From assembly GCA_965112735.1 (NCBI GenBank), contig OZ218964.1, positions 1,984,001 to 2,048,000 on the forward strand: a stretch of 64,000 nucleotides of DNA. Reading direction: 5' to 3'. How positions within the stretch are numbered: the first letter of the stretch is position 1; the number at the start of each line of letters is the position of its first letter. A program made the position numbers and the translations under genes. Positions 37,773 to 59,484 of the stretch are shown here, one piece after another. Under the pieces are notes generated by a model. It was not told the origin of the DNA. It was given only the letters and a program-made list of their open reading frames with translations, and did not search any database. The stretch is from Phaeosaccion multiseriatum (Eukaryota > Protista > Ochrophyta, other classes).

Positions 37773-37775
37773 TTT

Positions 37776-38175: not shown

Positions 38176-38178
38176 CTT

Positions 38179-39309: not shown

Positions 39310-41537
39310 TGAGTGAGGGGCTGTAGGTGAGGGGCAATGGGGGAGGAGCGGTCAGTTCCGATGAGATTTTCAATCCAATCACGGCTGAGGTCATCGGGGA
39401 TAAGGTTGATGCGCCCGGGGACATGGACGGTGTCGAGGCTGCACCGAGCACCGATCTCCAGGAGGCCCACCAGCCCTGCCAAGCCGTTGCTGATGGAGCT
39501 GTTGGGGGCCCCCTGGTTCTCTACCCAAGACAAGCTGCTGGTGTTGTCGCCACGCACTAGCACCGCTGAGAGGTCGAAAGCTGTTGGATGTTGGAGCCAG
39601 AAGGTGCAGAGGCCCGTAACGATCACGCCCATCTCCAAGTCGTTTACAGTGATCAATTTCGGGACCGTATGGTGTCGGGCTACTACCTCCGCAGGCCAGC
39701 GCCACTGTGCGAACATGGAGGCTTCTGCCCATACAATTCCCCCTCCCCAGTCAGACGCGTCTCCGTCGAGGCAAACGTCCGGTTGGCGAGGGACTAGTAG
39801 CTCCAAAGGGCACACCAGGATAGAGGGATCTTTCACCCCCCACACGCAGATAAGATGCCGCCAGCGCTGGAGGTCGAAGAGGGCGTCGTCGTCCAGAAAG
39901 AGCTTCGTACGCCCGGCAAAACGACCCGTACCACAGCCTCGGGTGAGATTGGTGAGCTGACGAAGCATGTAACGGCCGGGGCGAATGCAGAAGCTGATGC
40001 TGCGGAGCTTGCCGATAAAAGATTGAAGCTCCTTCAGCGTGCAAACGGTGCGAGTTGGAGGCCACTCAGCCAACAGAGTGTGCAGTTCGGCGAGCTTGTC
40101 GGGACGCAGAGAGGCAGTGCCGGCCTCCGTGTCGATCATGATGCCCAAAACTCGCTGCACGGAACGCCAGGGGCCCTCCTTCCCATGCTTCGCCAGATTG
40201 ATGCAGGAGGAAACATGTGGATTTTCCCCAGGCCAGCCGAAGAGGTTGTAGTGCATCGCCGTGATGATTCTGCTGAGCTGGAGGAGGGGGGCAGCTCGCT
40301 CGGCGGAGGGGAGGCCCCGTCGAGCTGCTTTAGCGGCTATGAGGTCGTCGCCGTGAACCACAGCATGGTGCTCTGGAATTTCCCCAACCGCCGTCGGAGT
40401 ACCCCGTAACTGTCGCCGTTGGATTGGCCGTTGCTCCTCCACATCAATCAGCTCCATGCCCGGGATGAGGCCGTTGCAACAAGCAGGGATGACGAGATGA
40501 GTGGTGAGAGCCGTAGCGCAGATGACGGCGACGAGACTCTGGGCCAAGACGAAGTAGAAAGAGGGGCTAGAGCAAGGGCCAAATCCGCAGCGCAAGTCGA
40601 AAACGCACACTGCTCCAACGACCGAGCAGAAGAAAGGCCAGAGGCCGGCCTGGCGGGAGTAGAAGATCCAGTTGAACGCAGAGCTGACGTCGGTCTTGGA
40701 GATGAGAATATCCCACTCGGAGGGGTCGAGAGAAAGGCTCCGCCGAACCAAGTAAGTGAGGAATTCCGTTAAAGCGTCGTGGCCCTTCATGTTGACTAAA
40801 GCCTCCTTGTCGGTCTGGCTGTTGGACGTAGGCTCTCCGTCGGAAGAGGCGAAGGTGGGGTCGGTGATGAGGCGCCACTCGCCGCTCTTCTTTTGGAGGA
40901 GGCCTAGGGGGTTGGGGCGCAAGTCCGGAAAAACCTGGCGCGCCAGCTCCACCGGTACCAGCAACACTTTCCCCTCCAACGAGCTAGTCACAGCGAGGTC
41001 CTCCAGCACCGTAGGATGCTCTCGTCCCGAGGGGTGGTTCCCGTACGCGTCTCGTTGGGCGGAAGGGACGGAGAAGAAGGTGCCAGGGACGGTGGCACCG
41101 TTGGTGGTAAGCTCATGGAGATGTGACCATAAAGGGACGTTGCCGAAGTAGCGCTCAATCCGTGCGGCGTCGAAGTAGGTGGGAGCGAAGGGAGGGCCTA
41201 GCCAAGCAAGGTAGGCCCCCAAGTCTCCGTGGAAGGCGATGAGGCCACGACCGTGGAGCTCGACGACGGAAGATGAAAAACTTTTCTCCCCATTGGCGCG
41301 GCGTCCAAATGCTGCGTCACTGAGGAAAGTCCGCTCCACCCACGCCCGATCAGCCGGCCGATGGTAGCACGGGACTTCGGGGGGCCGACGAGGCGGCCGT
41401 TCCGACCCTCGAGTAGCCAAGCCGCTCACCAACGTGTGCTCCGGAGGGCGGCGTGGGGGCCGGCCCTCGTTCCCCTCAGAGCCCTCTCCCCCTATCCCTG
41501 AAGGCACGATGAGAGGTGACACCGTGCCAGGGCCCCC
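39165..41537 (-). CDS. pol: Reverse transcriptase-RNase H, in frame with gag behind one TGA
   Basis: RT motifs: PLGLLQKKSGEWRLITD, SKTDVSSAF, LRCGFGPCSSP, HGDD, VLGIMIDT, LQSFIGKL. RNase H motifs: DGDASDWGGG, NDLE, VRGDN, HVPGRINLIPDDLSR. Confidence 0.95.
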   Translation of the reverse strand, partial: GGPGTVSPLIVPSGIGGEGSEGNEGRPPRRPPEHTLVSGLATRGSERPPRRPPEVPCYHRPADRAWVERTFLSDAAFGRRANGEKSFSSSVVELHGRGLIAFHGDLGAYLAWLGPPFAPTYFDAARIERYFGNVPLWSHLHELTTNGATVPGTFFSVPSAQRDAYGNHPSGREHPTVLEDLAVTSSLEGKVLLVPVELARQVFPDLRPNPLGLLQKKSGEWRLITDPTFASSDGEPTSNSQTDKEALVNMKGHDALTEFLTYLVRRSLSLDPSEWDILISKTDVSSAFNWIFYSRQAGLWPFFCSVVGAVCVFDLRCGFGPCSSPSFYFVLAQSLVAVICATALTTHLVIPACCNGLIPGMELIDVEEQRPIQRRQLRGTPTAVGEIPEHHAVVHGDDLIAAKAARRGLPSAERAAPLLQLSRIITAMHYNLFGWPGENPHVSSCINLAKHGKEGPWRSVQRVLGIMIDTEAGTASLRPDKLAELHTLLAEWPPTRTVCTLKELQSFIGKLRSISFCIRPGRYMLRQLTNLTRGCGTGRFAGRTKLFLDDDALFDLQRWRHLICVWGVKDPSILVCPLELLVPRQPDVCLDGDASDWGGGIVWAEASMFAQWRWPAEVVARHHTVPKLITVNDLEMGVIVTGLCTFWLQHPTAFDLSAVLVRGDNTSSLSWVENQGAPNSSISNGLAGLVGLLEIGARCSLDTVHVPGRINLIPDDLSRDWIENLIGTDRSSPIAPHLQPLTQWTQIMPDSIVLDAVFSALLGQPQRAVSALAPWIATHRSNANGWSSAN

Positions 41538-43262
41538 TCACCACCATGGTACCCCCGGAAGGCCGCCAAGACGGGCAGCGATGTTGTTGGTATGGGCCTT
41601 CTCCGCGGCGGTAGGAGCTTTGGAATCCCGCATGCCGCTCCGAAGGTGATTGACGGCTGTGGACTTCTGAGCAGTAGAGAGGGTGCCAGGGGTGCAGGGG
41701 GCGTAAGGGCATGAGCCAGACGAGGCCTCGGCGCACGACTGGGTCTTTAGCAGGGTGGTACAGGGTTTCAGAGCGCCATTCCCACGTCCGCCTCCCCCTC
41801 CGTTGCTGTTGCGTGTCCCCCCCAAGTCCATATCACGCAGCAGGCACGTGAGGAGGCCACGTTGGACGATGAGGGCCGCCGGGGAAGCGTAGTGGTCGAG
41901 CAGAGCGTGAAGAGAGAAGACAGGAGCGGTGTCGTAGGAAGCGGGAGGGAGGCTTTGGCAGCTGAGCCACTTAGCCGAATTGATGGAGTGGAGGTCGAGG
42001 AGAGCGTTGGTCGTGGAGCACAGGATGTCGGGGGGCATCCCTAGGGCCGAGGAGTCGCTGCGAGTGCACAGCTCGTCGAGGGTCGTAGAGAACTCGTCGA
42101 ACTCGTTGATAAAGTTGGCGTTCTCGGGGTAGACCAAACGGATGACGCTGACGAAGTTGTCGACAGTTGTCCGTAGGGCAGCGAACGAGCGAGGGAGGGG
42201 GCGAGCGACCGTAGGGAGTGCGATCACCGCGCCTCCTGCTTCTGCGCTCGAGCGTTGTAGGTCCGAATGCTCCAAGCGCAGAGCGGCGCTGAGCGCCGTG
42301 GTGCGCTCGCGGGGGGTGCAGCACTGAAGCTCGAAACCAGCAGGGATCCCAAACCGACCTTGGAGGAGCCCAGTGATGGCTTTGGGGTCGAACGCGACGT
42401 CTCGTGGGCTCATGAGCGTCTGCACGGCTGCAGTGACGCCGTGAGCGCCTTGGCGACGCACGTGAGAGACCTTGCCACCGTTAAGTAGGATAGCTAATGG
42501 GGCGACGGATTTACCTTTGTCTTCGCGGGTCGTGGTGGCGGAGGTGGCCGCTGTAGCCTTGGCCTCAGCGAGGCGAAGCTGCGCCAGCTCCGTCTCCGCT
42601 GTACGTCTCTCTAACTCAAGCTTATCCTCTGCTTCCGCGCGGTGGCGCTCACGATCTCGAAGAAAACGACGATGCTCGCGCTCAGCTGCTTCCTCCTCCC
42701 GAATCGCGAGAAGGGCCGCCTCGGAGAGGGGGGCCGAAGGCGAATGGGAGGAAGGTTGGGGAGGCAAGTGAGGTGCTGCCATCGTAGAAGAAGTCTGAAC
42801 CTTGGGCTCCGAATGAAGGCGAGCAGGGCCCGACGGAAGAGACGTGGTAGAAGTAGTAGGGAAGAGGGTGTGGAGGAGTGAGGCTGAAGTCGCCGGTTGG
42901 GCAACAACGCCTACTGCGGCGAGGTCTGCGAACGTCGAAACGGTCACGAGGTGCCAGCGAACGGATTCCTCCGCCGGCGAAGTGGGCAGAGAAGAGAGCT
43001 CACTCGGAGGGTTGGTGGAGGCCACCGCAAGCCACTCCTCCCAGACGTCTTGAGCGTAGATGTCGTCCGTGGGAAGGGAGAGGACGTGGTAGGAGGCCTC
43101 CGTGTAGTGACTTTTCCCTGAGCGAACCAGAATTGCTGGACGAAAAGAACCCTGAGACGACTTGTCCTTGTAGATGACGAGCGCTGCTTCCCCGTTGTTG
43201 GGACGGTGGGCGGCGACCCGAAGGAGCCTCGCGGCGTCCGATGAAGTGTCAAGAGGTGACAT
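41538..43262 (-). CDS. gag: Gag-like ORF1 (574 aa from ATG): Tudor-like N-terminus, coiled coil, C-terminal Cys cluster
   Basis: First ORF after the A repeat, with ATG at 43262. It has an E/R-rich coiled coil and a C-x8-C-x7-C-x4-C cluster near the C-terminus. The gag call is positional. Confidence 0.8.
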   Translation of the reverse strand: MSPLDTSSDAARLLRVAAHRPNNGEAALVIYKDKSSQGSFRPAILVRSGKSHYTEASYHVLSLPTDDIYAQDVWEEWLAVASTNPPSELSSLPTSPAEESVRWHLVTVSTFADLAAVGVVAQPATSASLLHTLFPTTSTTSLPSGPARLHSEPKVQTSSTMAAPHLPPQPSSHSPSAPLSEAALLAIREEEAAEREHRRFLRDRERHRAEAEDKLELERRTAETELAQLRLAEAKATAATSATTTREDKGKSVAPLAILLNGGKVSHVRRQGAHGVTAAVQTLMSPRDVAFDPKAITGLLQGRFGIPAGFELQCCTPRERTTALSAALRLEHSDLQRSSAEAGGAVIALPTVARPLPRSFAALRTTVDNFVSVIRLVYPENANFINEFDEFSTTLDELCTRSDSSALGMPPDILCSTTNALLDLHSINSAKWLSCQSLPPASYDTAPVFSLHALLDHYASPAALIVQRGLLTCLLRDMDLGGTRNSNGGGGGRGNGALKPCTTLLKTQSCAEASSGSCPYAPCTPGTLSTAQKSTAVNHLRSGMRDSKAPTAAEKAHTNNIAARLGGLPGVPWW

Positions 43263-43980
43263 GGTAGGAAAAACTTTGGTTGTCTGGTGGCGTGCACGTG
43301 GGCCACACCCCCCAAAGAATTGGGCCACGGGAGAGAGAGGAGAAGGCGGAGAGGGTAGTAGGACGTCAGGAGAGTCCTACTGTGATAGGCTGGTGGTGGG
43401 GAAAGGGCGAAGAGGGCAAAAGGCGCCGGTACGCAACACCGGGGAGGCGGTCGGCACGCAACACCAGACACCGCTGTCCTAAGCCATAGAGCCCCACAAC
43501 ACCGGCGAAGGGAAAGAAAAGAAGAGTTCCGGCACGCAACACCGTGGAGACTGTCGGCACGCAACACCAGACACAGTCTCCCTAGCTCTTCCTCTCTCTT
43601 CCTCGAGGATCCCGGCTCGCAACACCAGGCGGATCCCCTTGGCCAACACAAGCGCTCTGTCCGGGCCCAGGACAAGAGGCTCGCTTTCCACCACACCAGT
43701 ATCTACTCTCCTCCTTGACAGTGTGCTCCACTCTTCCTGGACTCTGTCTCCGCCGCCTCAGTAAGTGACAGCACACGCCAAGGTCTCTCCTCTTCTGAAA
43801 AATCTAAATTCCCTGCTTCACTGACATACTGTACATCTCCCCAGAGGGGACCCCCCCCTTGGGGCGGTACCAAGCACCTACGCTGACGCTTCGCCCTGCT
43901 GGCTCCCATGTCTCCCACCTCGTCCTCGTCTCTGTTCCGCGAGAAACAAAGTTCCGTTGCTGCGCTGCTGAACAGGCTTT

Positions 43981-46900
43981 CGCGCGGTCGCGGCGCTCGG
44001 GCGAAGGTGGGAAGCCAGTGAGAGGCCTCCTCCCTTCAGTCGTAGGCGAGGGCCCGGGAGATGTCCGACTCCCGCTCCAAGGCGTCGCAGTATGCATGCT
44101 GAGGACTATCCACATCCACGCCGTGGCCGGCTGTTCGAGGCCCAGAGGAATAGGGCTGGACTCCCAAGTGGCCACCTGCTCCGCAGGTGGAGAGGTCGTG
44201 GGCCAGGGGTAGCTAACGTTGGGGGAAGGACTCATCATTAGTAGGGGGGGGCAGTCCCGTGAGGGGGTCCCACCTCGGGAGCGCAGAGCGCCTCCAAGGG
44301 GGCCGCCTCCATGGGGAGGCCGCCCGGGTCCATGGAGGGAGAGCGGGCACCGGGAGCACCCCAAGTCCCGCTTCACCCCCACCCATCCGGACCCACCGGT
44401 GCGCTGCGAGTGGAGCTTGCAGCACCTGCCCCAGCCTAGTCGAGAGCCCACTCTCCCGATCGTAGTCGGCCGGTACACAAAACACAAAGATACACAAACA
44501 TTCATACGCAGACAGACATAATAATACACATACAGGGGCACCAGTAGACACAGACGCACACCAGTACACACACAGATACAAACACCCGCCGCGTGTACCG
44601 GTGTAGGGCTGCTGGTGCTGTTGCCAAGGGCTGCGCTCCCCGCTGCTGGGGGAGGAATGATGGCGAGGGAGGAGCCGCTGGTGTCGCCACGGGCAGAGTC
44701 AGTGTCCTTTGAAGAGGTCCCTTCGCACGCCCCCTGCTGACCATCACACACCCCCCACTCGCTTGGGATGGTGTGCTGGGGGGGAGGCGAGCCACTGAGT
44801 GAAATACACTGCGCAGTCCTCTGGCACGGCTGGTGGAAGCAGCAAAGCGCGCCCAAACCAGCAAATTCGGATTCTTTCCGGAATCACAGATCCAAAAGTG
44901 TCCATATATCCAACCCCTGTAGAAAAGCCGAAAATGCCCTCACAGAAGCGCTCATGTTTTCCGCTCCAAGCTCTTCGAACATCAACTCGTAGAAGTTACC
45001 CTTCTGCACACGCCGTACCAAGACCACTCCGCTGCGATTCCAACCGTTCGCCGCGGACTTCCGCTGTACCAGCTGAGCAATGCAACGAATGCAAAACACC
45101 TCGGTGCTGCGGGCCCGAAAAATGAACAAGTCCAATATCTCAAGCGCGGCGGCATCAATCCCTCGACCACCGAGCACGATAGCAAGAGGGTAGTCCATCC
45201 ATACTACTGCAAGTAAGTCGTGCAAGCAGAGCGAGCCACAAGCCCTGTTCTCTCCCATCCTCCATGTTCACACCGCTCACGAGCCCCAACGCCGAAAAAT
45301 CCATCACCTTCTCTTCTGCATCACAGGCAGGCCCCGACTTCCACTCCATAGCTGTTGTGAACGACCAAACGTCATGCTTCCGCCGTCCATTACAGATAAG
45401 TAGCCACACTGCTCAATGCCCCAATTTCCTTCAGCACCGGACGACGTACATCGCCGTACACTCCGGAGACGGTCACCAAACGCTGCCGTACCTCCCGAAA
45501 TGCGAGTACCGTGCACTCCCAATGCCGCCTTCCAATTCCCAATTCTCCCTCGTATGCTGTGCCTCTCTTGTCGCCCATCGGTTCGCTGTTATGGCCACAG
45601 GTCCCATATCCGCTCCACACGCAAACTAGAGGCGCCAACCACCATCAAAGGGCTCTCCGGTTCCTTCCAACAGCCCAAATAGCTGCCTTCGCATCCATGC
45701 TGCCACCTTTGACGCTCGTACTAACTGCCTGGCGGTTGCTGTTTGTCCTGAGAGCTGAGCCCCCATCGGACCCCCCCCCTCCCCTTCCCATGCGTTCGAG
45801 ATGGTGAGGGAGGTACAGCTGTAGTCCGTCTCCTTCCCTTCGCCGCTCCTCGGCCCGATATGTCTCTCGGATGTAGCTGCCGGAGGTGGGCTGTGCGAGC
45901 TCCCGTATCGAAGGTCAGCTACGCCCCCACCCATCCAGAGAGACTGCAGGCAAGCCCAGTGGCGACCACGTACGCCTCCTTCTGGCCATACTGCTGTTGT
46001 AGGTGGGGGACACTCCAACAACAAGGGAGGTACACTTAAACACGCAGACGTACACAAACATTCACAGGCACACAGACATAGACAAAGGCACAATACAGAG
46101 ACACCAGCACGCACAAACGGACACTAGCACACACAGACGCAGACCAGCACACACGGATACAAACACACATCGTGTGTAGGGGCAGTGACCATGGCTGCTG
46201 TTACCTAGGACTGCCCCGCCCGCCGTTGAGGGCCGGAATGGCGAGGGATGAGCCGCTGTTGTCACCACGCGCAGAGCCAGCCTCCTTTGTGGAGGAGGCC
46301 CTTATTCGCACGCCAAACACAGGAAATACGCACCCTACACACAGAAACACCGTCGAAACATACACACACAAACATACAGACAGACACCTGGAAGAGCTAA
46401 GGGGCCTGCCGTCACCCGGGAGCCCCTTTCGCCTCGCAAAAAGACAAAAAATGCCGTGGACCACATCCCCCAAACCTTGGGCCACGGGAGAGAGGAGAGG
46501 GCGGAGAGATGAGTAGGGCGTCGGCCTCAACACCGGACGCGGATCCTACGGCGATACCAGCAAGGAAGAAAGGGCGAAGAGGGCAAAAGGCGCCGGCACG
46601 CAACACCGTGGAGGCGGTCGGCACGCAACACCAGGCACCGCTTGTCCCAAGCCATAGAGCCCCGCAACACCGGCAAAGGAAAGAAAAGAAGAGTTCCGGC
46701 ACGCAACACCGTGGAGACTGTCGGCACGCAACACCAGACACAGTCTCCCTAGCTCTTCCTCCCTCTTCCACGAGGATCCCGGCTCGCAACACCAGGCGGA
46801 TCCCCTTGGCCAACACAAGCGCTCTGTCCGGGCCCAGGACAAGAGGCTCGCTTTCCACCACACCAGTATCTACTCTCCTCCTTGACAGTGTGCTCCACTC

Positions 46901-47168
46901 TTCCTGGACTCTGTCTCCGCCGCCTCAGTAAGTGACAGCACACGCCAAGGTCTCTCCTCTTCTGAAAAATCTAAATTCCCTGCTTCACTGACATAATGTA
47001 CATCTCTCCAGAGGGGACCCCCCCCCTTGGGGCGGTACCAAGCACCTACGCTGACGCTTCGCCCTGCTGGCTCCCATGTCTCCCACCTCTTCCTCGTCTC
47101 TGTTCCGCGAGAAACAAAGTTCCGTTGCTGCGCTGCTGAACAGGCTGTTGCTGCGCTGCTGAACAGGC
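43981..47168 (-). mobile_element. Non-autonomous element NA-4 (A-internal-B) fused directly upstream of autonomous copy 1, with a 23-bp terminal duplication
   Basis: A 46677-47145 and B 43981-44380, joined by ttt to the A at 43977. 'gttgctgcgctgctgaacaggct' is repeated at 47124-47146 and 47147-47169. Confidence 0.93.
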
Positions 47169-48792
47169 TTTGGCTGGACCCAAAACCAGCATTTGCGAAG
47201 TAAACACACCCCAAACGAGGCAGTTAAATGCTGGCCTTGATATGCCCGCGCCGGGCACTGGCTCTGCACAATAGGCCTAACCAACACACTACATGCCCAT
47301 AACAAAGCCAAGTCGGGCATGGAGTGGCCTCAAAATGCCCAATCTGGCCCTTGCATGGCTGGACCTAAATTCAGCATTTATTAGGTAAAGACAACCCAAA
47401 CAAGGCAGTTGCTGGCCTCGATATGCCCGCGCGGGGTGCTAGCTTCACTCTAATGGCCCAACCAACACACTGCATCCCAACAACGAAGCCGAGTCAGGCC
47501 TGGAGTGGCCTCAAAATGCCCAATGTGGCCCTCGGCTGGACACAAAATCGGTATTTGCAAGGCACAAACACCCCAAACGAGGCAGTTGCTGAGCTCGATA
47601 TGCCCGCGCTATGCACTAGATCAGCGCAACAGGCCTAACCAACACACTACATCCCCACAACGAAGCCGAGTCGGGCATGGAGTGGCCTCAAAATGCCCAA
47701 TCTGACCCTTGGCTGGACCCAAAACCAGCATTTTGCGAAGTAAACACACCCCAAACGAGGCAGTTGCTGGTTATGATATGCCCGCGCCGGGCACTGGCTC
47801 AGCACAATAGGCCTAACCAACACACTACATGCCCATAACAAAGCCAAGCCGGGCATGGAGTGACCTCAAAATGCCCAATCTGACCCTTGGCTGGACCCAA
47901 AACCAGCATTTGCGAAGTAAACACACCCCAAACGAGGCAGTTAATTGCTGGCCTTGATATGCCCGCGCCGGGCACTGGCTCTGCACAACAGGCCTAACCA
48001 ACACACTACATGCCCATAACAAAGCCAAGTCGGGCATGGAGTGGCCTCAAAATGCCCAATCTGACCCTTGGCTGGACCCAAAACCGGAATTTGCCAGACA
48101 CAAACACCTCAAACGAGGCAGTTGCTGGTCTTGATATGCCCGCGCCGAGCACTGGCTCAGCACAACAGGCCTAACCAACACACTACATGCCCATAACGAA
48201 GCCAAGTCGGGCATAGAATGGCCTCAAAATGCCCAATCTGGCACATGGCTGGACCCAAAACCGGAATTTGCCAGGCACAAACAACCCAAACGAGGCAGTT
48301 GCTGGTCTTGATATGCCCGCGCCGGGCACTGGCTCTGCACAATAGGCCTAACCAACACACTACATGCCCACAACGAAGCCAAGTCGGGCATAGAATGGCC
48401 TCAAAACGCGCAACCTGGCACATGGCTGGACCCAAAACCGGCATTTGCCAGGAACACACACCCCAAACGAGGCAGTTGCTGGTCTTGATCTGCCCGCGCC
48501 GGGCACTGGCTCAGCACAATACGTCAAACTGACACACTACATCCCCACAACGAAGCCAAGTCGGGCATAGAATGGCCTCAAAACGCGCAATCTGGCACAT
48601 GGCTGGACCCAAAACCGGCATTTGCCAGGCACAAACAACCGAAACGAGGCAGTTGCTGGTCTTGATATGCCCGCGCCGGGCACTGGCTCTGCACAATAGG
48701 CCTAACCAACACACTACATGCCCACAACGAAGCCAAGTCGGGCATAGAATGGCCTCAAAACGCGCAACCTGGCACATGGCTGGACCCAAAAA

Positions 48793-51700
48793 GCCTGTTC
48801 AGCAGCGCAGCAACGGAACTTTGTTTCTCGCGGAACAGAGACGAGGAAGAGGTGGGAGACATGGGAGCCAGCAGGGCGAAGCGTCAGCGTAGGTGCTTGG
48901 TACCGCCCCAAGGGGGGGGGTCCCCTCTGGAGAGATGTACAGTATGTCAGTGAAGCAGGGAATTTAGATTTTTCAGAAGAGGAGAGACCTTGGCGTGTGC
49001 TGTCACTTACTGAGGCGGCGGAGACAGAGCCCAGGAAGAGTGGAGCACACTGTCAAGGAGGAGAGTAGATACTGGTGTGGTGGAAAGCGAGCCTCTTGTC
49101 CTGGGCCCGGACAGAGCGCTTGTGTCGGCCAAGGGGACCCGCCTGGTGTTGAGTGCCGGGGTCCTCGTGGGCGAGGGAAGGAGAGATAGGGAGACTGTGT
49201 CTGGTGTTGAGTGCCGACAGTGTCCACGGTGTTGAGTGCCGGAACTCTTCTTTTCTTTCCCTTTGCCGGTGTTGTGGGGCTCTACGGCTTAGGAGCGGTG
49301 TCTGGTGTTGAGTGCCGACCGCCGCCCCGGTGTTGAGTGCCGGCGCCTTTTGCCCTCTTCGCCCTTTCTTCCTTGCTGGTATCGCCGTAGGATCCGCGTC
49401 CGGTGTTGAGGCCGACGCCCTACTCATCTCTCCGCCCTCTCCTCTCTCCCGTGGCCCAAGGTTTGGGGGGTGTGGTCCACGGCATTTTTTGTCTTTTTAC
49501 GAGACGAAAGGGGCTCCCGGGTGACGGCAGGCCCCTTAGCTCTTCCAGGTGTTTGTCTGTATGTTTGTGTGTGTATGTCCGGACGGTGTTTCTGTGTGTA
49601 GGGTGCGTATTTCCTGTGTTTGGCGTGCGAATATGCGCCTCCTCCGCAAAGGAGGCTGGCTCTGCGCGCGGTGACAACAGCGGCTCATCCCTCGCCATTC
49701 CGGCCCTCAACGGCGGGCGGGGCAGTCCTAGGCAACAGCAGCCGTGGTCACTGCCCCTACACACGATGTGTGTTTGTATCTGTGTGTGCTGGTCTGCGTC
49801 TGTGTGTGCTAGTGTGCGTTTGTGGGTGCTGGTGTCCCTGTATTGTGCCTTTGTCTATATCTGTGTGCCTGTGAATGTTTGTGTACGTCTGCGTGTTTAA
49901 GTGTACCTCCCTTGTTGTTGGAGTGTCTCCCACCTACAACAGCAGTATGGCCAGAAGGAGGCGTACGGGGTCGCCACTGAGCTTGCCTGCAGTCTCTCTG
50001 GATGGGTGGGGGCGTAGCTGACCTTCGATACGGGAGCTCGCACAGCTCACCTCCGGCAGCTACATCCGAGAGACATATCGGGCCGAGGAGCGGCGAAGGG
50101 AAGGAGACGGACTACAGCTGTACCTCCCTCACCATCTCGAACGCATGGGAGGGGGAGGGGGGGGGTCCGATGGAGGCTCAGCTCTCAGGACAAACAGCAA
50201 CCGCAAAGCAAATAGTACGAGCGTCAAAGGCGGCAGCATGGATGCGAAGGCAGCTATTCGGGCTGTTGGAAGGAACCGGAGAGCCCTTTGATCGTGGTTG
50301 GCGCCTCGAGTTTGCGTGTGGAGCGGATATGGGACCTGTGGCCATAACAGCGAACCGATGGGCGACAAGAGAGGCACAGCATACGAGGGGGAATTGAGAA
50401 TTGGAAGGCGGCATTGGGAGTGTACGGTACTCGCATTTCGGGAGGTACGGCAGCGTTTGGTGACCGTCTACGGAGTGTACGGCGATGTACGTCGTCCGGT
50501 GCTGAAGGAAATTGGGGCATTGAGCAATCTGGCTACTTATCTGTAATGGACGGCGGAAGCATGATGTTTGGTCGTTCACAACAGCTATGGAGTGGAAGTC
50601 GGGGCCTGCCTGTGATGCAGAAGAGAAGGTGATGGTTTTTTCGGCGTTGGGGCTCGTGAGCGGTGTGAACATGGAGGATGGGAGAGAACAGGGCTTGTGG
50701 CTCGCTCTGCTTGCACGACTTACTTCCGGTAGTATGGATGGACTACCCTCTTGCTATCGTGCTCGGTGGTCGAGGGATTGGTGCCGCCGCGCTTGAGATA
50801 TTGGACTGGTTCATTTTTCGGGCCCGCAGCACCGAGGTGTTTGGCATTCGCTGTATTGCTCAGCTGGTACAGCGGAAGTCCACGGCGGACGGTTGGAATC
50901 GCAGCAGAGTGGTCTTGGTACGGCGTGTGCAGAAGGGTAACTTCTACGAGTTGATGTTCGAAGAGCTTGGAGCGGAAAACATGAGCGCTTCTGTGAGGGC
51001 ATTTTCGGCTTTTCTACAGGGGTTGGATATATGGACACTTTTGGATCTGTGATTCCGAAAAGAATCCGAATTTGCTGGTTTGGGCGCGCTTTGCTGCTTC
51101 CACCCGCCGTGCCAGAGGACTGCGCAGTGTATTTCGCTCAGTGGCTCGCCCCCCCCCCAGCACACCATCCCAAGCGAGTGGGGGGTGTGTGATGGTCAGC
51201 AGGGGGCGTGCGAAGGGACCTCTTCAAAGGACACTGACTCTGCCCGTGGCGACACCAGCGGCTCCTCCCTCGCCATCATTCCTCCCCCAGCAGCGGGGAG
51301 CGCAGCCCTTGGCAACAGCACCAGCAGCCCTACACCGGTACACGCGGCGGGTGTTTGTATGTGTGTGTGTACTGGTGTGCGTCTGTGTCTACTGTTGCCC
51401 CTGTATGTGTATTATTATGTCTGTGTGCGTATGAATGTTTGTGTATCTTTGTGTTTTGTGTACCGGCCGACTACGATCGGGAGAGTGGGCTCCCGACTAG
51501 GCTGGGGCAGGTGCTGCTGCACCCTCGCAGCGCACCGGTGGGTACTCGGATGGGTGGGGGTGAAGCGGGACTTGGGGTGCTCACTGCGGTGGCACCCCAA
51601 GCTCCACTACATCCGAAACCCGGTGCCCGCCTCCCTCCATGGAGGCGGCCCCCTTGGAGGCGCTCTGCGCTCCCGAGGTGGGACCCCCTCACGGGACTGC

Positions 51701-51970
51701 CCCCCCCTACTAATGATGAGTCCTTCCCCCAACGTTAGCTACCCCTGGCCCACGACCTCTCCACCTGCGGAGCAGGTGGCCACTTGGGAGTCCAACCCTA
51801 TTCCTCTTGGCCTCGAACAGCCGGCTACGGCGTGGATGTGGATAGTCCTCAGCTTGCATACTGCGACGCCTTGGAGCGGGAGTCGGACATCTCCCGGGCC
51901 CTCGCCTACGACTGAAGGGAGGAGGCCTCTCACTGGCTTCCCACCTTCGCCCGAGCGCCGCGACGGCGCG
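48793..51970 (+). mobile_element. Non-autonomous element NA-5, short form A-internal-B
   Basis: Reverse complement of the NA-2 core. A 48793-49261, B ~51556-51970. The satellite rejoins as gacccaa aaa | aac cggcatt. Confidence 0.95.
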
Positions 51971-54900
51971 AACCGGCATTTGCCAGGAACACACACCCCA
52001 AACGAGGCAGTTGCTGGTCTTGATCTGCCCGCGCCGGGCACTGGCTCAGCACAATACGTCAAACTGACACACTACATCCCCACAACGAAGCCAAGTCGGG
52101 CATAGAATGGCCTCAAAATGCCCAATCTGGCACATGGCTGGACCCAAAACCGGAATTTGCCAGACACAAACACCTCAAACGAGGCAGTTGCTGGTCTTGA
52201 TATGCCCGCGCCGGGCACTGGCTCTGCACAATAGGCCTAACCAACACACTACATCCCCACAACAAAGCCATGTCGGGCATGGAATGGCCTCAAAACGCCC
52301 AATCTGGCACATGGCTGGACCCAAAACCGGAATTTGCAAGGCACAAACACCCAAAACGAGGCAGTTGCTGAGCTCGATATGCCCGCGCTATGCACTAGAT
52401 CAGCGCAACAGGCCTAACCAACACACTACAGGGCCACAACGAAGCCGAGTCGGGCATGGAGTGGCCTCAAAATGCCCAATCTGACCCTTGGCTGGACCCA
52501 AAACCAGCATTTGCGAAGTAAACACACCCCAAACGAGGCAGTTGCTGGCCTTGATATGCCCGCGCCGGGCACTGGCTCTGCACAATAGGCCTAACCAACA
52601 CACTACATGCCCATAACAAAGCCAAGTCGGGCATGGAGTGGCCTCAAAATGCCCAATCTGGCCCTTGCATGGCTGGACCTAAATTCAGCATTTATTAGGT
52701 AAAGACAACCCAAACAAGGCAGTTGCTGGCCTCGATATGCCCGCGCGGGGTGCTAGCTTCACTCTAATGGCCCAACCAACACACTGCATCCCCACAACGA
52801 AGCCGAGTCAGGCCTGGAGTGGCCTCAAAATGCCCAATGTGGCCCTTGGCTGGACACAAAATCGGTATATGCAAGGCACAAACACCCCAAACGAGGCAGT
52901 TGCTGAGCTCGATATGCCCGCGCTATGCACTAGATCAGCCCAACAGGCCTAACCAACACACTACATCCCCACAACGAAGCCGAGTCGGGCATGGAGTGGC
53001 CTCAAAATGCCCAATCTGACCCTTGGCTGGACCCAAAACCAGCATTTTGCGAAGTAAACACACCCCAAACGAGGCAGTTGCTGGTTATGATATGCCCGCG
53101 CCGGGCACTGGCTCAGCACAATAGGCCTAACCAACACACTACATGCCCATAACAAAGCCAAGCCGGGCATGGAGTGACCTCAAAATGCCCAATCTGACCC
53201 TTGGCTGGACCCAAAACCAGCATTTGCGAAGTAAACACACCCCAAACGAGGCAGTTAATTGCTGGCCTTGAGATGCCCGCGCCGGGCACTGACTCTGCAC
53301 AATAGGCCTAACCAACACACTACATGCCCATAACAAAGCCAAGTCGGGCATGGAGTGGCCTCAAAATGCCCAATCTGACCCTTGGCTGGACCCAAAACCG
53401 GAATTTGCCAGACACAAACACCTCAAACGAGGCAGTTGCTGGTCTTGATATGCCCGCGCCGAGCACTGGCTCAGCACAACAGGCCTAACCAACACACTAC
53501 ATGCCCATAACGAAGCCAAGTCGGGCATAGAATGGCCTCAAAATGCCCAATCTGGCACATGGCTGGACCCAAAACCGGAATTTGCCAGGCACAAACAACC
53601 CAAACGAGGCAGTTGCTGGTCTTGATATGCCCGCGCCGGGCACTGGCTCTGCACAATAGGCCTAACCAACACACTACATGCCCACAACGAAGCCAAGTCG
53701 GGCATAGAATGGCCTCAAAACGCGCAATCTGGCACATGGCTGGACCCAAAACCGGCATTTGCCAGGAACACACACCCCAAACGAGGCAGTTGCTGGTCTT
53801 GATCTGCCCGCGCCGGGCACTGGCTCAGCACAATACGTCAAACTGACACACTACATCCCCACAACGAAGCCAAGTCGGGCATAGAATGGCCTCAAAATGC
53901 CCAATCTGGCACATGGCTGGACCCAAAACCGGAATTTGCCAGGCACAAACAACCCAAACGAGGCAGTTGCTGGTCTTGATACACTCGCGCCGGGCACTGG
54001 CTCTGCACAATAGGCCTAACCAACACACTACATCCCCACAACAAAGCCAAGTCGGGCATGGAATGGCCTCAAAACGCCCAATCTGGCACATGGCTGGACC
54101 CAAAACCGGAATTTGCAAGGCACAAACACCCAAAACGAGGCAGTTGCTGAGCTCGATATGCCCGCGCTATGCACTAGATCAGCGCAACAGGCCTAACCAA
54201 CACACTACAGGGCCACAACGAAGCCGAGTCGGGCATGGAGTGGCCTCAAAATGCCCAATCTGACCCTTGGCTGGACCCAAAACCAGCATTTGCGAAGTAA
54301 ACACACCCCAAACGAGGCAGTTGCTGGCCTTGATATGCCCGCGCCGGGCACTGGCTCTGCACAATAGGCCTAACCAACACACTACATGCCCATAACAAAG
54401 CCAAGTCGGGCATGGAGTGGCCTCAAAATGCCCAATCTGGCCCTTGCATGGCTGGACCTAAATTCAGCATTTATTAGGTAAAGACAACCCAAACAAGGCA
54501 GTTGCTGGCCTCGATATGCCCGCGCGGGGTGCTAGCTTCACTCTAATGGCCCAACCAACACACTGCATCCCCACAACGAAGCCGAGTCAGGCCTGGAGTG
54601 GCCTCAAAATGCCCAATGTGGCCCTTGGCTGGACACAAAATCGGTATTTGCCAGGCACAAACAGCCGGTTCAGCAGCGCAGCAACGGAACTTTGTTTCTC
54701 GCGGAGCAGAGACGAGGGAGTGGGCGGGAAGCAACGAGGGCCCGAGGGGCAGTGCCGCGGGCGGCCCAGCCCCGAGGGGAGCGGCCTCTCCCCCGGGGAA
54801 CATATTACTTTTGTACCAAACTTAGGAATTTAGAAGAGGAGGAGCCTTGGAGTGTGTCGCCGCCTACTGAAGCAACGGAGACAGTGCACAGGTAAGGCGG

Positions 54901-54999
54901 GACACACTGCCAAGGAGGAGAGGTAGATACTGGTGTAGTGGAAAGCGAGCCTCAGTCCTGGGCCCGGACAGAGAGCTTCGTGTTGGCCAAGGGGACCCG

Positions 55000-55202
55000 C
55001 CTGGTGTTGAGTACCGGGGTCCTCGTGGGCGAGGGAAGGAGAGATAGGGAGACTGTGTCTGGTGTTGAGTGCCGACAGTGTCCACGGTGTTGAGTGCCGG
55101 AACTCTTCTTTTCTTTCCCTTTGCCGGTGTTGTGGGGCTCTCCGGCTAAGGAGCGGTGTCTGGTGTTGAGTGCCGACCGTCTCCCCGGTGTTGAGTGCCG
55201 GC
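55000..55202 (+). promoter_or_regulatory. Array of five leader hairpins GGUG-UUGAG-UGCC (candidate packaging signal)
   Basis: Five copies of ggtgttgagt(g/a)cc with complementary flanks upstream of gag. The array is retained in the non-autonomous copies. Confidence 0.5.
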
Positions 55203-55365
55203 GCCTCCTGCCCTCTTCGCTCTTTCCACACCACCAGCCTATCGCAGTAGGACCCCCCCTGACGTCCTACTACCCTTTCCGCCTTCTCCTCTCTCTCCCG
55301 TGGCCCAATTCTTTGGGGGGTGTGGCCCACGTGCACGCCACCAGACAACCAAAGCTTTTCCTACC

Positions 55366-57111
55366 ATGTCACCTCTCGGCACTTCCTCGGACGCCAAGAG
55401 GCTCCTTCGGGTCCCTGACCACCGTCCCAACAACGGAGAAGCAGCGTTCGTCATCTACAAGGACAAGTCACCTAAGGCCTTTTTTCGGCCAGCAATTCTG
55501 GTTCGCTCAGGGAACAGCCACTACATGGAGGCCATCTACCACGTCCTCTCCCTGCCCACGGACGACATCATCTACGCTCAAGACGTCTGGGAGGAGTGGC
55601 TTGCGGTGGCCTCCACCAACCCTCCGAGTGAACTCTCTTCTCTGCCCACTTCACCGGCAGAGGAATCCGTTCGCTGGCACCTCGTGACCGCTCCAACGTT
55701 CACAGACCTCGCCACGGTAGGCGTGGTAGCCCAATCGGCGACTTCCGCTTCACACCTCCACACCCTCTTCCCTACCACTTCTACCACGTCTCTTCCTGCG
55801 GGCCCCGCTCGCCTTCACCCGGAGCCCAAGGTTCAGACATCTACAACGGCGGCACTCCGCACCGCCTCCTCTCCACCCCACCTGCCTCCCCAACCTTCCT
55901 CCCGTTCGCCTTCAGCCCCCCTCTCGGCGGCGGCCCTTCTCGCGATTCAGGAGGAGGAAGCAGCTGAGCGCGATCATCGTCGTTTCCTTCGAGATCGTGA
56001 GCGCCAACGCGCGGAAGCAGAGGATAAGCTCGAGTTAGAGAGACGTACAGCGGAGACTGAGCTGGCACAGCTTCGCCTCGCGGAGGCCAAGGCTACCGCG
56101 GCCACCTCCGCCACCACGACCCGCGAAGACAAAGGTAAATCCGTCGCCCCATTAGCTATCCTACTTAACGGTGGCAAGGTCTCTCACGTTCGTCGCCAAG
56201 GAGCTCATGGCGTCTCGGCCGCAGCGCAGACGCTCATGGGCCCGCGAGACGTCGCGTTCGACCCAAAAGCGATCACTGGGCTCCTTCAAGGACGGTTTGG
56301 CATCCCCGATGGTTTTGAGCTCCAATGCTGCACCCCTCGCGAGCGCACCACGGCGCTTAACGCCGCTCTCCGCTTGGAGCACTCGGACCTCCAGCGCTCG
56401 AGCGCAGAAGCAGGGGGCGCAGTCGTCGCTCTCCCTACGATCGCCCGCCCGCTCCCTCGCTCTTTCGCTGCTCTCCGGACCACCGTCGACAACTTCGTCA
56501 GCGTCATCCGCCTGGTCTACCCCGAGAACACCAACTTTATCGACGAGTTCGACGAGTTCTCTACGACCCTCGACGAACTCTGCACACGCAGCGACTCCTC
56601 GGCGCTAGGGATGCCTCCCGACATCCTGTGCTCCACCACCAACGCTCTGCTCGACCTCCACTCCACCACCTCAGCTAAGTGGCTCAGCTGCCAAAGCCTC
56701 CCGCCCGCTTCCTACGACACCGCTCCTGTCTTCTCTCTTTACGCTCTGCTCGACCACTACGCTTCCCCAGCGGCTCTCATCGTCCAGCGTGGTCTCCTCA
56801 CGTGCCTCCTGCGTGATGTGGACTTGGGGGGGACACGCAACGGCAATGGAGGGGGAGGAGCACGTGGGAATGGCGCCCTCAAGCCCTGTATCACCCTACT
56901 CAAGACCCAGTCTTGCACTGAAGCTTTGTCTGGCTCATGCTCTTTCGCGCCCTGTGCCCCTGGATCCCTCTCTACTCCCCAGAAGAACTCAGCCGTCTCT
57001 CACCTTAAGAGCGGCATGCGGGATCCCAAAGCCCCTACCCCTGCGGAGAGGTCCCACGCCACCAACATCGCTCTTCGCCTTGGCGGCCTTCCAACGGTAC
57101 CGTGGTGGTGA
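55366..57111 (+). CDS. gag: Gag-like ORF1 (581 aa from ATG)
   Basis: Homologue of 41538-43262, with ATG at 55366. It is divergent at the N-terminus and in the C-terminal Cys region. Confidence 0.8.
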   Translation: MSPLGTSSDAKRLLRVPDHRPNNGEAAFVIYKDKSPKAFFRPAILVRSGNSHYMEAIYHVLSLPTDDIIYAQDVWEEWLAVASTNPPSELSSLPTSPAEESVRWHLVTAPTFTDLATVGVVAQSATSASHLHTLFPTTSTTSLPAGPARLHPEPKVQTSTTAALRTASSPPHLPPQPSSRSPSAPLSAAALLAIQEEEAAERDHRRFLRDRERQRAEAEDKLELERRTAETELAQLRLAEAKATAATSATTTREDKGKSVAPLAILLNGGKVSHVRRQGAHGVSAAAQTLMGPRDVAFDPKAITGLLQGRFGIPDGFELQCCTPRERTTALNAALRLEHSDLQRSSAEAGGAVVALPTIARPLPRSFAALRTTVDNFVSVIRLVYPENTNFIDEFDEFSTTLDELCTRSDSSALGMPPDILCSTTNALLDLHSTTSAKWLSCQSLPPASYDTAPVFSLYALLDHYASPAALIVQRGLLTCLLRDVDLGGTRNGNGGGGARGNGALKPCITLLKTQSCTEALSGSCSFAPCAPGSLSTPQKNSAVSHLKSGMRDPKAPTPAERSHATNIALRLGGLPTVPWW

Positions 57112-57166
57112 GGGGGCCCTGGTACGGTGTCACCTCTCATCGTGCCTTCAGGGATTGGGGGAGAGG
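57109..57166 (+). promoter_or_regulatory. Predicted stop-codon readthrough signal (UGA, G5 spacer, stem-loop/H-type pseudoknot)
   Basis: CCCUG/CAGGG and GUACGGUG/CAUCGUGC form a stem. Loop CCUCU is complementary to downstream AGAGG. The same fold is available at 41483-41540 on the minus strand. Confidence 0.6.
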
Positions 57167-59484
57167 GCCCTGCAGGGAACGAGGGCCGGCCCCCACGCCG
57201 CCCTCCGGAGCACACGTTGGTGAGCAGCTTGGCTCCTCGAGGGTTGGAACGGCCGCCCCGTCGGCCCCCCGAAGTCCCGTGCTACCAAAGGCCTGCTGAT
57301 CGGGCGTGGGTGGAGCGGACATTCCTCAGTGACGCAGCATTTGGACGCCGCGCCAATGGGGAGGAAAGTTTTTCATCTTCCGTCGTCGAGCACCATGGCC
57401 GTGGCCTCATCGCCTTCCACGGAGACTTGGGGGCCTACCTTGCTTGGCTCGGCCCTCCCTTCGCTCCCACCTACTTCGACGCCGCACGGATTGAGCGCTA
57501 CTTCGGCAACGTCCCTTTATGGTCACATCTCCATGAGCTTACCACCAACGGTGCCACCGTCCCTGGCACCTTCTTCTCCGTCCCCTCCGCCCAACGAGAC
57601 GCGTACGGGAACCACCCCTCGGGACGAGAGCATCCTACGGTGCTGGAGGACCTCGCTGTGACTAGCTCGTTGGAGGGGAAAGTGTTGCTGGTACCGGTGG
57701 AGCTGGCGCGCCAGGTTTTTCCGGACTTGCGCCCCAACCCCCTAGGCCTCCTCCAAAAGAAGAGCGGCGAGTGGCGCCTCATCACCGACCCCACCTTCGC
57801 CTCTTCCGACGGAGAGCCTACGTCCAACAGCCAGACCGACAAGGAGGCTTTAGTCAACATGAAGGGCCACGACGCTTTAACGGAATTCCTCACTTACTTG
57901 GTTCGGCGGAGCCTTTCTCTCGACCCCTCCGAGTGGGATATTCTCATCTCCAAGACCGACGTCAGCTCTGCGTTCAACTGGATCTTCTACTCCCGCCAGG
58001 CCGGCCTCTGGCCTTTCTTCTGCTCGGTCGTTGGAGCAGTGTGCGTTTTCGACTTACGCTGCGGATTTGGCCCTTGCTCTAGCCCCTCTTTCTACTTCGT
58101 CTTGGCCCAGAGTCTCGTCGCCGTCATCTGCGCTACGGCTCTCACCACTCATCTCGTCATCCCTGCTTGTTGCAACGGCCTCATCCCGGGCATGGAGCTG
58201 ATTGATGTGGAGGAGCAACGGCCAATCCAACGGCGACAGTTACGGGGTACTCCGACGGCGGTTGGGGAAATTCCAGAGCACCATGCTGTGGTTCACGGCG
58301 ACGACCTCAGTGCCGCCAAAGCAGCTCGACGGGGCCTCCCCTCCGCCGAGCGGGCCGCCCCCCTCCTCCAGCTCAGCAGAATCATCACGGCGATGCACTA
58401 CAACCTCTTCGGCTGGCCTGGGGAAAATCCACATGTTTCCTCTTGCATCAATCTGGCGAAGCATGGGAAGGAGGGCCCCTGGCGTTCCGTGCAGCGAGTT
58501 TTGGGCATCATGATCGACACGGAGGCCGGCACTGCCTCTCTGCGTCCCGACAAGCTCGCCGAACTGCACGCTCTGTTGGCGGAGTGGCCTCCAACTCGCA
58601 CCGTTTGCACGCTGAAGGAGCTTCAATCTTTTATCGGCAAGCTCCGCAGCATCAGCTTCTGCATTCGCCCCGGCCGTTACATGCTTCGTCAGCTCACCAA
58701 TCTCACCAGAGGCTGTGGTACGGGTCGTTTTACCGGGCGTACGAAGCTCTTTCTGGACGACGACGCCCTCTTCGACCTCCAGCGCTGGCGGCATCTTATC
58801 TGCGTGTGGGGGGTGAAAGATCCCTCTATCCTGGTGTGCCCTTTGGAGCTACTAGTCCCTCGCCAACCGGACGTTTGCCTCGACGGAGACGCGTCTGACT
58901 GGGGAGGGGGAATTGTATGGGCAGAGGCCTCCATGTTCGCACAGTGGCGCTGGCCTGCGGAGGTAGTAGCCCGACACCATACGGTCCCGAAATTGATCAC
59001 TGTAAACGATTTGGAGATGGGCGTGATCGTTACGGGCCTCTGCACCTTCTGGCTCCAACATCCAACAGCTTTCGACCTCTCAGCGGTGCTAGTGCGTGGC
59101 GACAACACCAGCAGCTTGTCTTGGGTAGAGAACCAGGGGGCCCCCAACAGCTCCATCAGCAACGGCTTGGCAGGGCTGGTGGGCCTCCTGGAGATCGGTG
59201 CTCGGTGCAGCCTCGACACCGTCCATGTCCCCGGACGCATCAACCTTATCCCCGATGACCTCAGCCGTGATTGGATTGAAAATCTCATCGGAACTGACCG
59301 CTCCTCCCCCATTGCCCCTCACCTACAGCCCCTCACTCAGTGGACGCAAATCATGCCGGACTCAATCGTTTTGGACGCGGTCTTCTCAGCTCTGCTCGGG
59401 CAGCCGCAGCAAGCGGTCTCCGCCCTAGCACCTTGGATCGCTACTCATCGGTCCAACGTCAATGGATGGAGTTCTGCCAACTAG
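57112..59484 (+). CDS. pol: Reverse transcriptase-RNase H, in frame with gag behind TGA 57109-57111
   Basis: Same RT and RNase H motifs as copy 1. The first in-frame ATG is only at 57859. Confidence 0.95.
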   Translation, partial: GGPGTVSPLIVPSGIGGEGPAGNEGRPPRRPPEHTLVSSLAPRGLERPPRRPPEVPCYQRPADRAWVERTFLSDAAFGRRANGEESFSSSVVEHHGRGLIAFHGDLGAYLAWLGPPFAPTYFDAARIERYFGNVPLWSHLHELTTNGATVPGTFFSVPSAQRDAYGNHPSGREHPTVLEDLAVTSSLEGKVLLVPVELARQVFPDLRPNPLGLLQKKSGEWRLITDPTFASSDGEPTSNSQTDKEALVNMKGHDALTEFLTYLVRRSLSLDPSEWDILISKTDVSSAFNWIFYSRQAGLWPFFCSVVGAVCVFDLRCGFGPCSSPSFYFVLAQSLVAVICATALTTHLVIPACCNGLIPGMELIDVEEQRPIQRRQLRGTPTAVGEIPEHHAVVHGDDLSAAKAARRGLPSAERAAPLLQLSRIITAMHYNLFGWPGENPHVSSCINLAKHGKEGPWRSVQRVLGIMIDTEAGTASLRPDKLAELHALLAEWPPTRTVCTLKELQSFIGKLRSISFCIRPGRYMLRQLTNLTRGCGTGRFTGRTKLFLDDDALFDLQRWRHLICVWGVKDPSILVCPLELLVPRQPDVCLDGDASDWGGGIVWAEASMFAQWRWPAEVVARHHTVPKLITVNDLEMGVIVTGLCTFWLQHPTAFDLSAVLVRGDNTSSLSWVENQGAPNSSISNGLAGLVGLLEIGARCSLDTVHVPGRINLIPDDLSRDWIENLIGTDRSSPIAPHLQPLTQWTQIMPDSIVLDAVFSALLGQPQQAVSALAPWIATHRSNVNGWSSAN

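Follow-up and report, generated by a model that had tools for sequence, protein, structure and literature searches.

The window analysed here is a stretch of 64,000 nucleotides from Phaeosaccion multiseriatum (contig OZ218964.1 of assembly GCA_965112735.1, positions 1,984,001 to 2,048,000). It consists mostly of a 177-bp satellite that is interspersed with insertions of one retrotransposon family, comprising two autonomous copies (the helpers), five non-autonomous (NA) elements (the parasites) and one solo repeat A; the helper ends are common to all of them. Upstream of gag the elements carry an array of a 13-nt motif that occurs in two versions differing in a single base, and every array consists of one version throughout. 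We consider the array likely to be a signal that acts in cis for the mobilisation of the element, and we lean, with somewhat less assurance, towards an RNA hairpin as the form in which it acts.

The leader motifs form uniform arrays of two classes

The window was searched for the motif GGTGTTG[C/A]GTGCC (GGTGTTGNGTGCC) with at most one mismatch. This gave 47 matches, whereas 0.99 were expected and shuffled sequences gave a maximum of 4. All 47 motifs lie on the sense strand of an element and are grouped into 11 arrays of three or five, always in the same orientation and with a spacing of 25 bp that is fixed within pairs. The leader arrays have five motifs, H1 to H5, with H2-H3 and H4-H5 as duplicate modules. 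The arrays of the downstream repeat A2 and of the solo A have the first three only, because repeat A stops just past H3. The distance from the arrays to the gag ATG downstream is 65-360 nt. Between H3 and H4 there is a seventh motif, the degenerate GGTGTTG[T/C]GGGGC; its variable base is mostly U and is C in NA-3 and NA-4.

Each of the 11 arrays was either all-C or all-A, and none was mixed. C-type arrays are found in the leader and A2 of copy 1, in NA-3, in NA-4 and in the solo A, and A-type arrays in copy 2, in NA-1 and NA-2 (leader and A2 each) and in NA-5. The motif search thus confirmed the first-pass annotation, which had read UUGCG throughout copy 1, NA-3, NA-4 and the three motifs of the solo A, and UUGAG throughout copy 2, NA-1, NA-2 and NA-5. 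Since NA-1 and NA-2, exactly 15,409 bp apart, represent one segmental duplication, the independent arrays number about six or seven, fewer than 11. When C-type and A-type NA elements were compared, 26 differences were observed in a block of 280 nt, and five of these are the five loop positions, all of them C/A. Random placement of the differences would hit these positions with P=4.8e-6, or about 6e-8 if the same change is required. The all-or-none loop classes are beyond what random substitution explains.

Deamination of CpG was rejected as the source of the loop difference, as C to A is a transversion and decay would yield UUGUG or UUGCA. A separate amplification of the array in each lineage was ruled out, since the flanks of H1-H5 are orthologous between the classes. 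Young copies are present in both classes: B1 and B2 of copy 1, with A2 in between, are 99.75% identical, and A1 and A2 of NA-1 are identical over the stretch aligned.

Four of the motifs lie on stem-loops supported by covariation

When 45-nt windows were folded, H1, H2, H4 and an NA-specific sixth motif, H6 (GGTGTTGAGGCC, GCGUC/GACGC stem), showed one common structure. This structure comprises a lower stem of 5-9 bp, a bulge of 3 nt on the 5' side and a top of 4 bp (U.G, G-C, G-C, U.G), and the loop is GUUGNGU, or UUGNG when the tandem G.U pairs close. H6 is identical in all five NA copies, with A in the loop. The annotation had given all five leader hairpins complementary flanks, which holds for H1, H2 and H4 (and for H6) and fails for H3 and H5. 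Its general form GGUG-loop-UGCC does not always apply; H1 ends in AGCC (C-type) or in UACC/UGCC (A-type).

The sequence of the lower stem varies between the hairpins while the pairing is kept. In an alignment of 16 distinct hairpins, 85% of the cells pair, compared to 29-50% when the partners are slid, and five pairs of the lower stem change on both sides. The covariation score was 0.397 versus at most 0.113 and was reached by none of 500 shuffles; the signal comes mostly from three paralogous stems of unrelated sequence, plus one orthologous compensatory change. The latter, from U-A to C-G, is in the H1 stem, with GGAUCC/GGAUCC in every C-type array and GGACCC/GGGUCC in every A-type array. 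Stem-loops backed by covariation, as in packaging signals, are confined to H1, H2, H4 and H6. Thanks to its G.U pairs, the sense strand gives a fold 20-30 kcal/mol more stable than that of the antisense strand. A search of the leader against Rfam gave no match.

Outside the motifs, folding predicts that the purine-rich H1-H2 spacer pairs with a stretch of pyrimidines downstream of H3 (43575-43600 with 43505-43530 in copy 1; the same in copy 2), so that a single domain would enclose H2 and H3. Where the parasites have H6, a plain hairpin of 7 bp, GUAGGAC...GUCCUAC, is found in the helpers (43345-43385; 55240-55280); it lacks the motif, and the parasites seem to have grafted an additional motif-bearing tip onto it.

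The hairpin block is shared and exchanged between helpers and parasites

The sharing of the block was analysed by a sliding comparison of NA and helper copies. The A-type NA elements and copy 2 are near identical over the first ~55 nt of repeat A and cannot be aligned over the next ~200 nt. Over the 150 nt that contain H1-H3 no difference was found, then 1-2 differences per 30 nt over H4-H5, followed by complete divergence. NA elements and helpers have few stretches in common, and the hairpin block is one of them. As in packaging signals, the array precedes gag in the 5' leader, and the non-autonomous partners have retained it. C-type and A-type NA elements are about 99% identical everywhere but inside the hairpin block.

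Repeat A itself exists in two backbones that are about 80% identical, the NA type, which includes A1 of copy 1, and the helper type, found in A2 of copy 1 and A1 of copy 2. It is a mosaic in which all four combinations of backbone and loop class are present. In A2 of copy 1 the hairpins go with the C-type (H1 at five differences, H2-H3 at three), and the spacer between H1 and H2 goes with the A-type. To judge by these sequences, the block is very probably a cis-acting signal that is swapped as a unit by recombination. The annotation had proposed that NA-3 and NA-4 captured the UUGCG leader. The change of class through exchange of the block is borne out, but it is the A-type parasites that are identical to a helper, and the C-type parasite block differs from A2 of copy 1 in the H1-H2 spacer, so the sharing pattern does not favour one direction of capture.

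The first ~55 nt of every A (AGCCTGTTCAGCAGCGCAGCAACGG...; in copy 1 at 43934-43978) are near invariant across helpers and parasites. They are a second candidate for a site acting in cis, which might serve, for instance, the recombinase or the RNA ends.

The two helpers differ most in the C-terminal tail of Gag

From about codon 100 of pol to B1 the two helpers are about 99% identical. The divergence is about 9% in the leader, in the whole of gag and in the initial ~95 codons of pol. From this difference between the 3' and 5' parts we conclude that, by sequence, the helpers are recombinants sharing a 3' half. The proteins differ at 70/581 positions in Gag, 13/790 in pol (eight of them in the first 94) and 4/376 in the tyrosine recombinase (YR). 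The description of the copies as almost identical in pol and YR and divergent in the Gag tail was correct in that the tail is the most divergent protein segment, with 20 of the last 74 residues exchanged (27%); the divergence is not limited to the tail but extends over the whole 5' part.

Gag is overall under purifying selection, with a ratio of non-synonymous to synonymous substitution rates (dN/dS, omega) of 0.20. In the last ~60 codons omega is 0.5-0.8, and dS is not raised. The per-domain comparison that had been suggested as a check gave an excess of non-synonymous over synonymous changes in the tail relative to the rest of Gag (Fisher p=0.0015), and an omega that does not exceed 1.

The tail consists of a Gly/Arg-rich stretch, a Cys cluster with the spacing Cx8Cx7Cx4C and a basic region. 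The four Cys are kept in both alleles, and six of the residues between them differ, including a Y/F exchange two places past the third Cys. The cluster departs from the Cx7-8Cx4-6Cx3H of a CCCH finger, and the Cx2Cx4Hx4C spacing of the retroviral zinc knuckle is absent from both alleles. Searches of Gag and pol against Pfam gave no match, including none to RVT_1 for pol. The motifs KKSGEWRLITD and HGDD, like those of reverse transcriptases, were found in pol by eye. The AlphaFold model of Gag was poor (pLDDT 38.6), with the coiled coil alone confident, and a search of the ESM Atlas with Gag returned no usable look-alike. A covarying complementary partner inside the element was also looked for and rejected: no sequence complementary to the loop varies with the class, and ACGCAAC occurs once, at the same position of gag in both classes.

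Three distant relatives of the element carry a CCCH finger at the end of ORF1

Word searches with Gag and pol retrieved no relatives, and scans of metagenomes for the DNA pattern of the hairpin pair and for relatives of Gag were likewise negative. Among 1.84 billion representative proteins the best match to pol had an identity of 36%. Several of the pol relatives are on short metagenome contigs with the order gag-pol-YR, and two of them give weak matches to RVT_1. On three of the contigs (L002, L004 and L008) the first open reading frame, ORF1, was readable. All three ORF1 products end with a Gly-rich stretch and a CCCH finger, spaced Cx8Cx6Cx3H, Cx7Cx4Cx3H and Cx8Cx4Cx3H, respectively, and each with a C-x-F-x-H. 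The finger is at the position of the Cx8Cx7Cx4C cluster of the window Gag and shares with it the aromatic residue two places past the third Cys. ORF1 of L004 gives a weak match to zf-CCCH_10 (E=0.007, below the cut-off), and it aligns weakly with the central part of the window Gag (E=0.008).

Since the relatives have a CCCH finger at the same position, the Cys cluster of Gag is most likely a modified CCCH-type finger. CCCH-type fingers read the bases of single-stranded RNA, which would make Gag a reasonable reader of the loop base. Whether Gag is the reader is for us almost an even question, inclining slightly to doubt. A literature search found no paper that reports a CCCH finger in Gag for this order.

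Two gag variants are present in public sequence data

Public data of the same organism were available as short Logan contigs. Where gag was covered, they contain exactly two gag variants; one is like copy 2, and the other matches copy 1 at 33 of the 36 positions listed, with an equal count of differences. In one sample the two variants have roughly equal depth (about 1:1). The hairpin block is 10-75x deeper than gag, therefore the parasites and solo repeats vastly outnumber the helpers.

A second sample (run X5; 55347-57200) has copy-2-like contigs over the first two thirds of gag and only the copy-1 type of the tail. This suggests that gag genes are recombinant between strains, although holes in contigs prove nothing. 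A marker of the C-type NA arrays accounts for 26% of the block depth in the second sample and 11% in the first, and the A-type markers still dominate. A rise of this C-type marker where the copy-2-type tail is missing is in the direction that a matching of loops and tails predicts, as a very weak indication. Another organism, listed under a different name in the same study (run X6; 54918-55257), has the block with ~98% identity at low depth, and no gag was found at 85% likeness or more. This may reflect parasites without a close helper or a carry-over between samples.

Architecture of the elements

Elements of the Ngaro/PAT-like type, YR retrotransposons with split direct repeats, are defined by the order A1-[ORFs]-B1-A2-B2 (PMC6681497, PMC8547959). 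Copy 1 has this repeat order of the Ngaro/PAT-like elements (order DIRS), and the YR products match PF00589 with E=2.4e-6 to 3.4e-6 (27.4-27.9 bits; cut-off 27.1). The genes gag and pol share one frame and are separated by a single UGA (UGG UGG UGA GGG GGC; 41538-41540 and 57109-57111). A1 of copy 1 is only 80% identical to its own A2, and A1 and the leader carry the NA-type backbone, whereas B1 and B2 are 99.75% identical. Copy 1 is for this reason a chimera of helper and parasite, with the junction somewhere in repeat A or in the hairpin block. NA-4 (47146-43979) directly adjoins copy 1 on the minus strand (36847-47146). In copy 2, B1 runs straight into the satellite, and NA-5 (48792-51972) likewise stops at a B-like end; both are insertions of one unit (A-body-B) and not full split-direct-repeat forms. 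The positions of all features are listed in Table 1.

Table 1. Features of the retrotransposon family in the window; the last row refers to the contigs of the relatives.
Feature	Position	Strand	Remarks
Autonomous copy 1	36847-43978	-	A1, leader, gag, UGA, pol, YR, B1, A2, B2
Copy 1 repeats	B1 38175-37774; A2 37773-37249; B2 37248-36847	-	
Copy 1 leader array	43428-43626	-	five motifs, all UUGCG
Copy 1 hairpins	H1 43614-43626; H2 43556-43568; H3 43531-43543; H4 43453-43465; H5 43428-43440	-	
Copy 1 A2 array	37322-37417	-	H1-H3, all UUGCG; helper-type repeat A backbone
gag allele 1	41541-43262	-	574 aa; Cys cluster Cx8Cx7Cx4C 41694-41762, tail to 41541
Autonomous copy 2	54663-60876	+	A1, leader, gag, UGA, pol, YR, B1; without A2-B2
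Copy 2 leader array	55003-55199	+	five motifs, all UUGAG
gag allele 2	55366-57108	+	581 aa; Cys cluster 56887-56955, tail to 57108
Degenerate motif	copy 1 43491-43503; copy 2 55126-55138		
NA-1 arrays	leader 9834-10030; A2 6756-6851	-	leader five UUGAG; A2 three UUGAG
NA-2 arrays	leader 25243-25439; A2 22165-22260	-	leader five UUGAG; A2 three UUGAG
NA-3 array	34681-34879	-	five UUGCG; H6 (UUGAG) 34609-34620
NA-4 array	46595-46793	-	five UUGCG; H6 (UUGAG) 46523-46534
NA-5 array	49145-49341	+	five UUGAG; H6 49402-49413
Solo A repeat	2944-3417	-	within satellite
Solo A array	2970-3065	-	three UUGCG
ORF1 of relatives	L002:47-1642; L004:215-1813; L008:1292-3193		

Proposed function of the array and alternatives

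We propose that the array would be a recognition signal acting in cis on the sense-strand RNA of a tyrosine-recombinase retrotransposon of the Ngaro/PAT type. The extended stem-loops H1, H2 and H4, with H6 in the parasites, and the bare H3 and H5 would display G-UUGNG-U at their tips, and several copies of the signal would be read by a protein of the element. The likeliest reader would be the C-terminal tail of the Gag-like ORF1 product with its Gly-rich stretch, putative zinc finger and basic region. Being read would mark the RNA for recruitment or encapsidation and then for reverse transcription, and the NA elements, which have little else in common with the helper, would retain the block so that they can be mobilised. 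The UUGCG and UUGAG versions would pass between helpers and parasites as a block via recombination and may each suit the recognition preference of one of the two Gag tail alleles. That the arrays are uniform despite frequent recombination argues for a need to be homotypic, which points to a reader that distinguishes C from A. Among the proteins of the element, the classes are distinguished by Gag only (or by the ~95 N-terminal residues of pol). We hold this explanation as a whole, with a signal on the sense RNA, the Gag tail as reader and two versions, only tentatively. Its last element, two matched specificities of loop and Gag tail, we regard as doubtful, and we would say the same of one family with two orthogonal codes, each pairing a Gag zinc-finger tail with an RNA loop, in which a helper escapes its parasites by switching all loops and the parasites recombine the block in.

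A number of observations speak against this proposal. On the RNA side, H3 and H5, which come second in their pairs, lack flanks that could support a stem, the lower stem of the A-type H2 has a G.G mismatch, and shuffled sequences fold as well as the block as a whole (z -0.7 and -1.6). H6 remains UUGAG in the C-type parasites, as the annotation had already recorded for NA-3 and NA-4. On the protein side, the Cys cluster is neither canonical CCCH nor CCHC and matches no Pfam model, the omega of the tail is below 1, and two other short segments of Gag have an omega near 0.5. An array comparable to H1-H5 is absent from the 1.3-kb leader of L008 (1-1291), the sole long leader among the relatives, and none of the RNA runs contains the element. 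For the pairing of loop and gag, there are two copies (n=2), the leader of copy 1 is of NA type and chimeric, and leader and gag are contiguous in one diverged 5' block. The proposal of two Gag/packaging classes in the annotation stands as far as two discrete loop classes exist and each helper has one class with one gag allele; as a match it has an n of 2, and since leader and gag are adjacent in one haplotype, linkage alone would yield the association.

We give one alternative the same limited credence as the matched specificities. The cis signal would be the same, but C and A would be no matched switch; one would be an improved or equivalent form of the other, read by either Gag or by another factor of the element or the host, which arose once as a haplotype and spread by recombination of the block, so that the pairing with gag reflects physical linkage. 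The adjoining of leader and gag within one diverged 5' haplotype in both copies fits this well, as do the frequent recombination evident from the mosaic of repeat A with all four combinations of backbone and class, the omega of the tail below 1, and the second sample, where A-type markers dominate the block depth and yet no contig of the copy-2-type tail was found. However, if the loops were equal, nothing would maintain the uniformity under recombination, and 0 of 11 arrays are mixed. Five identical transversions would require selection at each site or gene conversion over identities of 13-22 nt, which is an unlikely route, and the young copies in both classes also argue against it.

The motifs could also act as duplex DNA, as direct-repeat sites for the recombinase (accessory or arm-type) or for a host transcription factor, or as a promoter element in repeat A, which we find improbable. 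Such sites would explain the single orientation, the spacing of 25 bp fixed within pairs and the position of the array across the 3' edge of repeat A, and a DNA palindrome would conserve the inverted-repeat flanks as well. Against this, the recombinase is near identical between the classes (4/376), so it offers no match to the switch, and the array is 350-580 nt from the start of A, which is the junction of element and satellite, and thus away from any crossover site. Lower stems that differ in sequence and keep their pairing fit a structure rather than a sequence-specific recognition of duplex DNA, and the upper stem depends on conserved G.U pairs that exist on the sense strand only. A pairing of the motifs with another nucleic acid, either as microhomology for a template switch at the edge of repeat A, in the dimerisation of the RNA or with a host RNA as primer, seems to us a shade less probable again. 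It would enforce uniformity within an array, and it suits the duplicate modules H2-H3 and H4-H5 and an array that spans the boundary of A, where the strand transfers of split-direct-repeat elements are expected. But a complement of the loop that covaries is lacking within the elements, the loop itself is not self-complementary, and simple microhomology needs no conserved hairpin architecture.

Comparison with known systems

The proposed RNA signal can be compared with the psi signals of retroviruses and LTR retrotransposons, which are read by the nucleocapsid domain of Gag, such as SL1-SL4 of HIV-1 and psi of murine leukaemia virus. Like them, the array is placed after the terminal repeat and ahead of gag in the 5' leader, has a number of stem-loops whose conserved loop bases are exposed, has a presumed reader in the Cys-rich basic C-terminus of Gag and is retained by defective elements. 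It differs in that the element belongs to the tyrosine-recombinase (DIRS) order, that one 13-mer is repeated 5-6 times, that the Cys cluster is Cx8Cx7Cx4C (CCCH-like in the relatives) and not the zinc knuckle, and that the system is known from sequence alone. In the literature searched, no paper connects a packaging signal with tyrosine-recombinase retrotransposons. A single loop consensus on repeated stem-loops is also known from packaging signals of the alphavirus and MS2 types, where binding has been demonstrated. The 4-6 similar hairpins with the same short loop motif resemble these and would imply a multivalent, cooperative capture by a coat protein; unlike those RNA viruses, a nuclear retrotransposon is concerned here, with two allelic versions of the loop within one genome.

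The partnership of long and short interspersed elements (LINE and SINE) is based on a shared 3' stem-loop (UnaL2/UnaSINE1) that is read by the reverse transcriptase (RT). There, as here, the parasites retain just the recognition hairpin of the helper and can gain it by recombination. The array described here is at the 5' leader instead of the 3' end, and pol is near invariant between the classes. Base reading by CCCH zinc fingers is known from TIS11d and ZAP. The window Gag resembles these in the position and spacing of the first three Cys and in the aromatic residue past the third, and ORF1 of L002, L004 and L008 has true Cx7-8Cx4-6Cx3H fingers after the Gly-rich stretch; in the window Gag, however, a fourth Cys takes the place of the His, one residue later, and the binding of zinc and RNA is putative.

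VIPER/SIRE of trypanosomes and Ngaro of Cafeteria are tyrosine-recombinase retrotransposons with A1-[ORFs]-B1-A2-B2 repeats, and VIPER, with the gene order gag-YR-RT, has a short non-autonomous partner made of terminal sequences (PMC6681497, PMC8547959). The family in the window resembles them in the split direct repeats, and VIPER also in having a short non-autonomous partner, but its gene order is gag-pol-YR. No cis-acting hairpin array and no specificity classes have been described for VIPER/SIRE or Ngaro.

Implications

Almost nothing is known about how tyrosine-recombinase retrotransposons choose their RNA and how they mobilise non-autonomous partners. The locus offers a compact candidate signal, a 13-nt motif on defined hairpins, and a candidate reader, the ~95-residue Gag tail with its Gly-rich stretch, Cys cluster and basic tail. 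It further offers a natural single-nucleotide switch in all copies of the signal at once, with parasites in both states. If loops and tails are not matched, the block still sets the minimal cis-requirements of the element family. If they are matched, the family would be a clear natural case of helper-parasite co-evolution over packaging specificity and a simple system for how a CCCH-like finger reads one base. If the reading of two codes is true, there would be an arms race over packaging specificity within one genome, in an order for which no packaging signal is described in the literature searched. The helper would escape its far more numerous parasites, which would then follow suit by taking up its block into their leaders through recombination.

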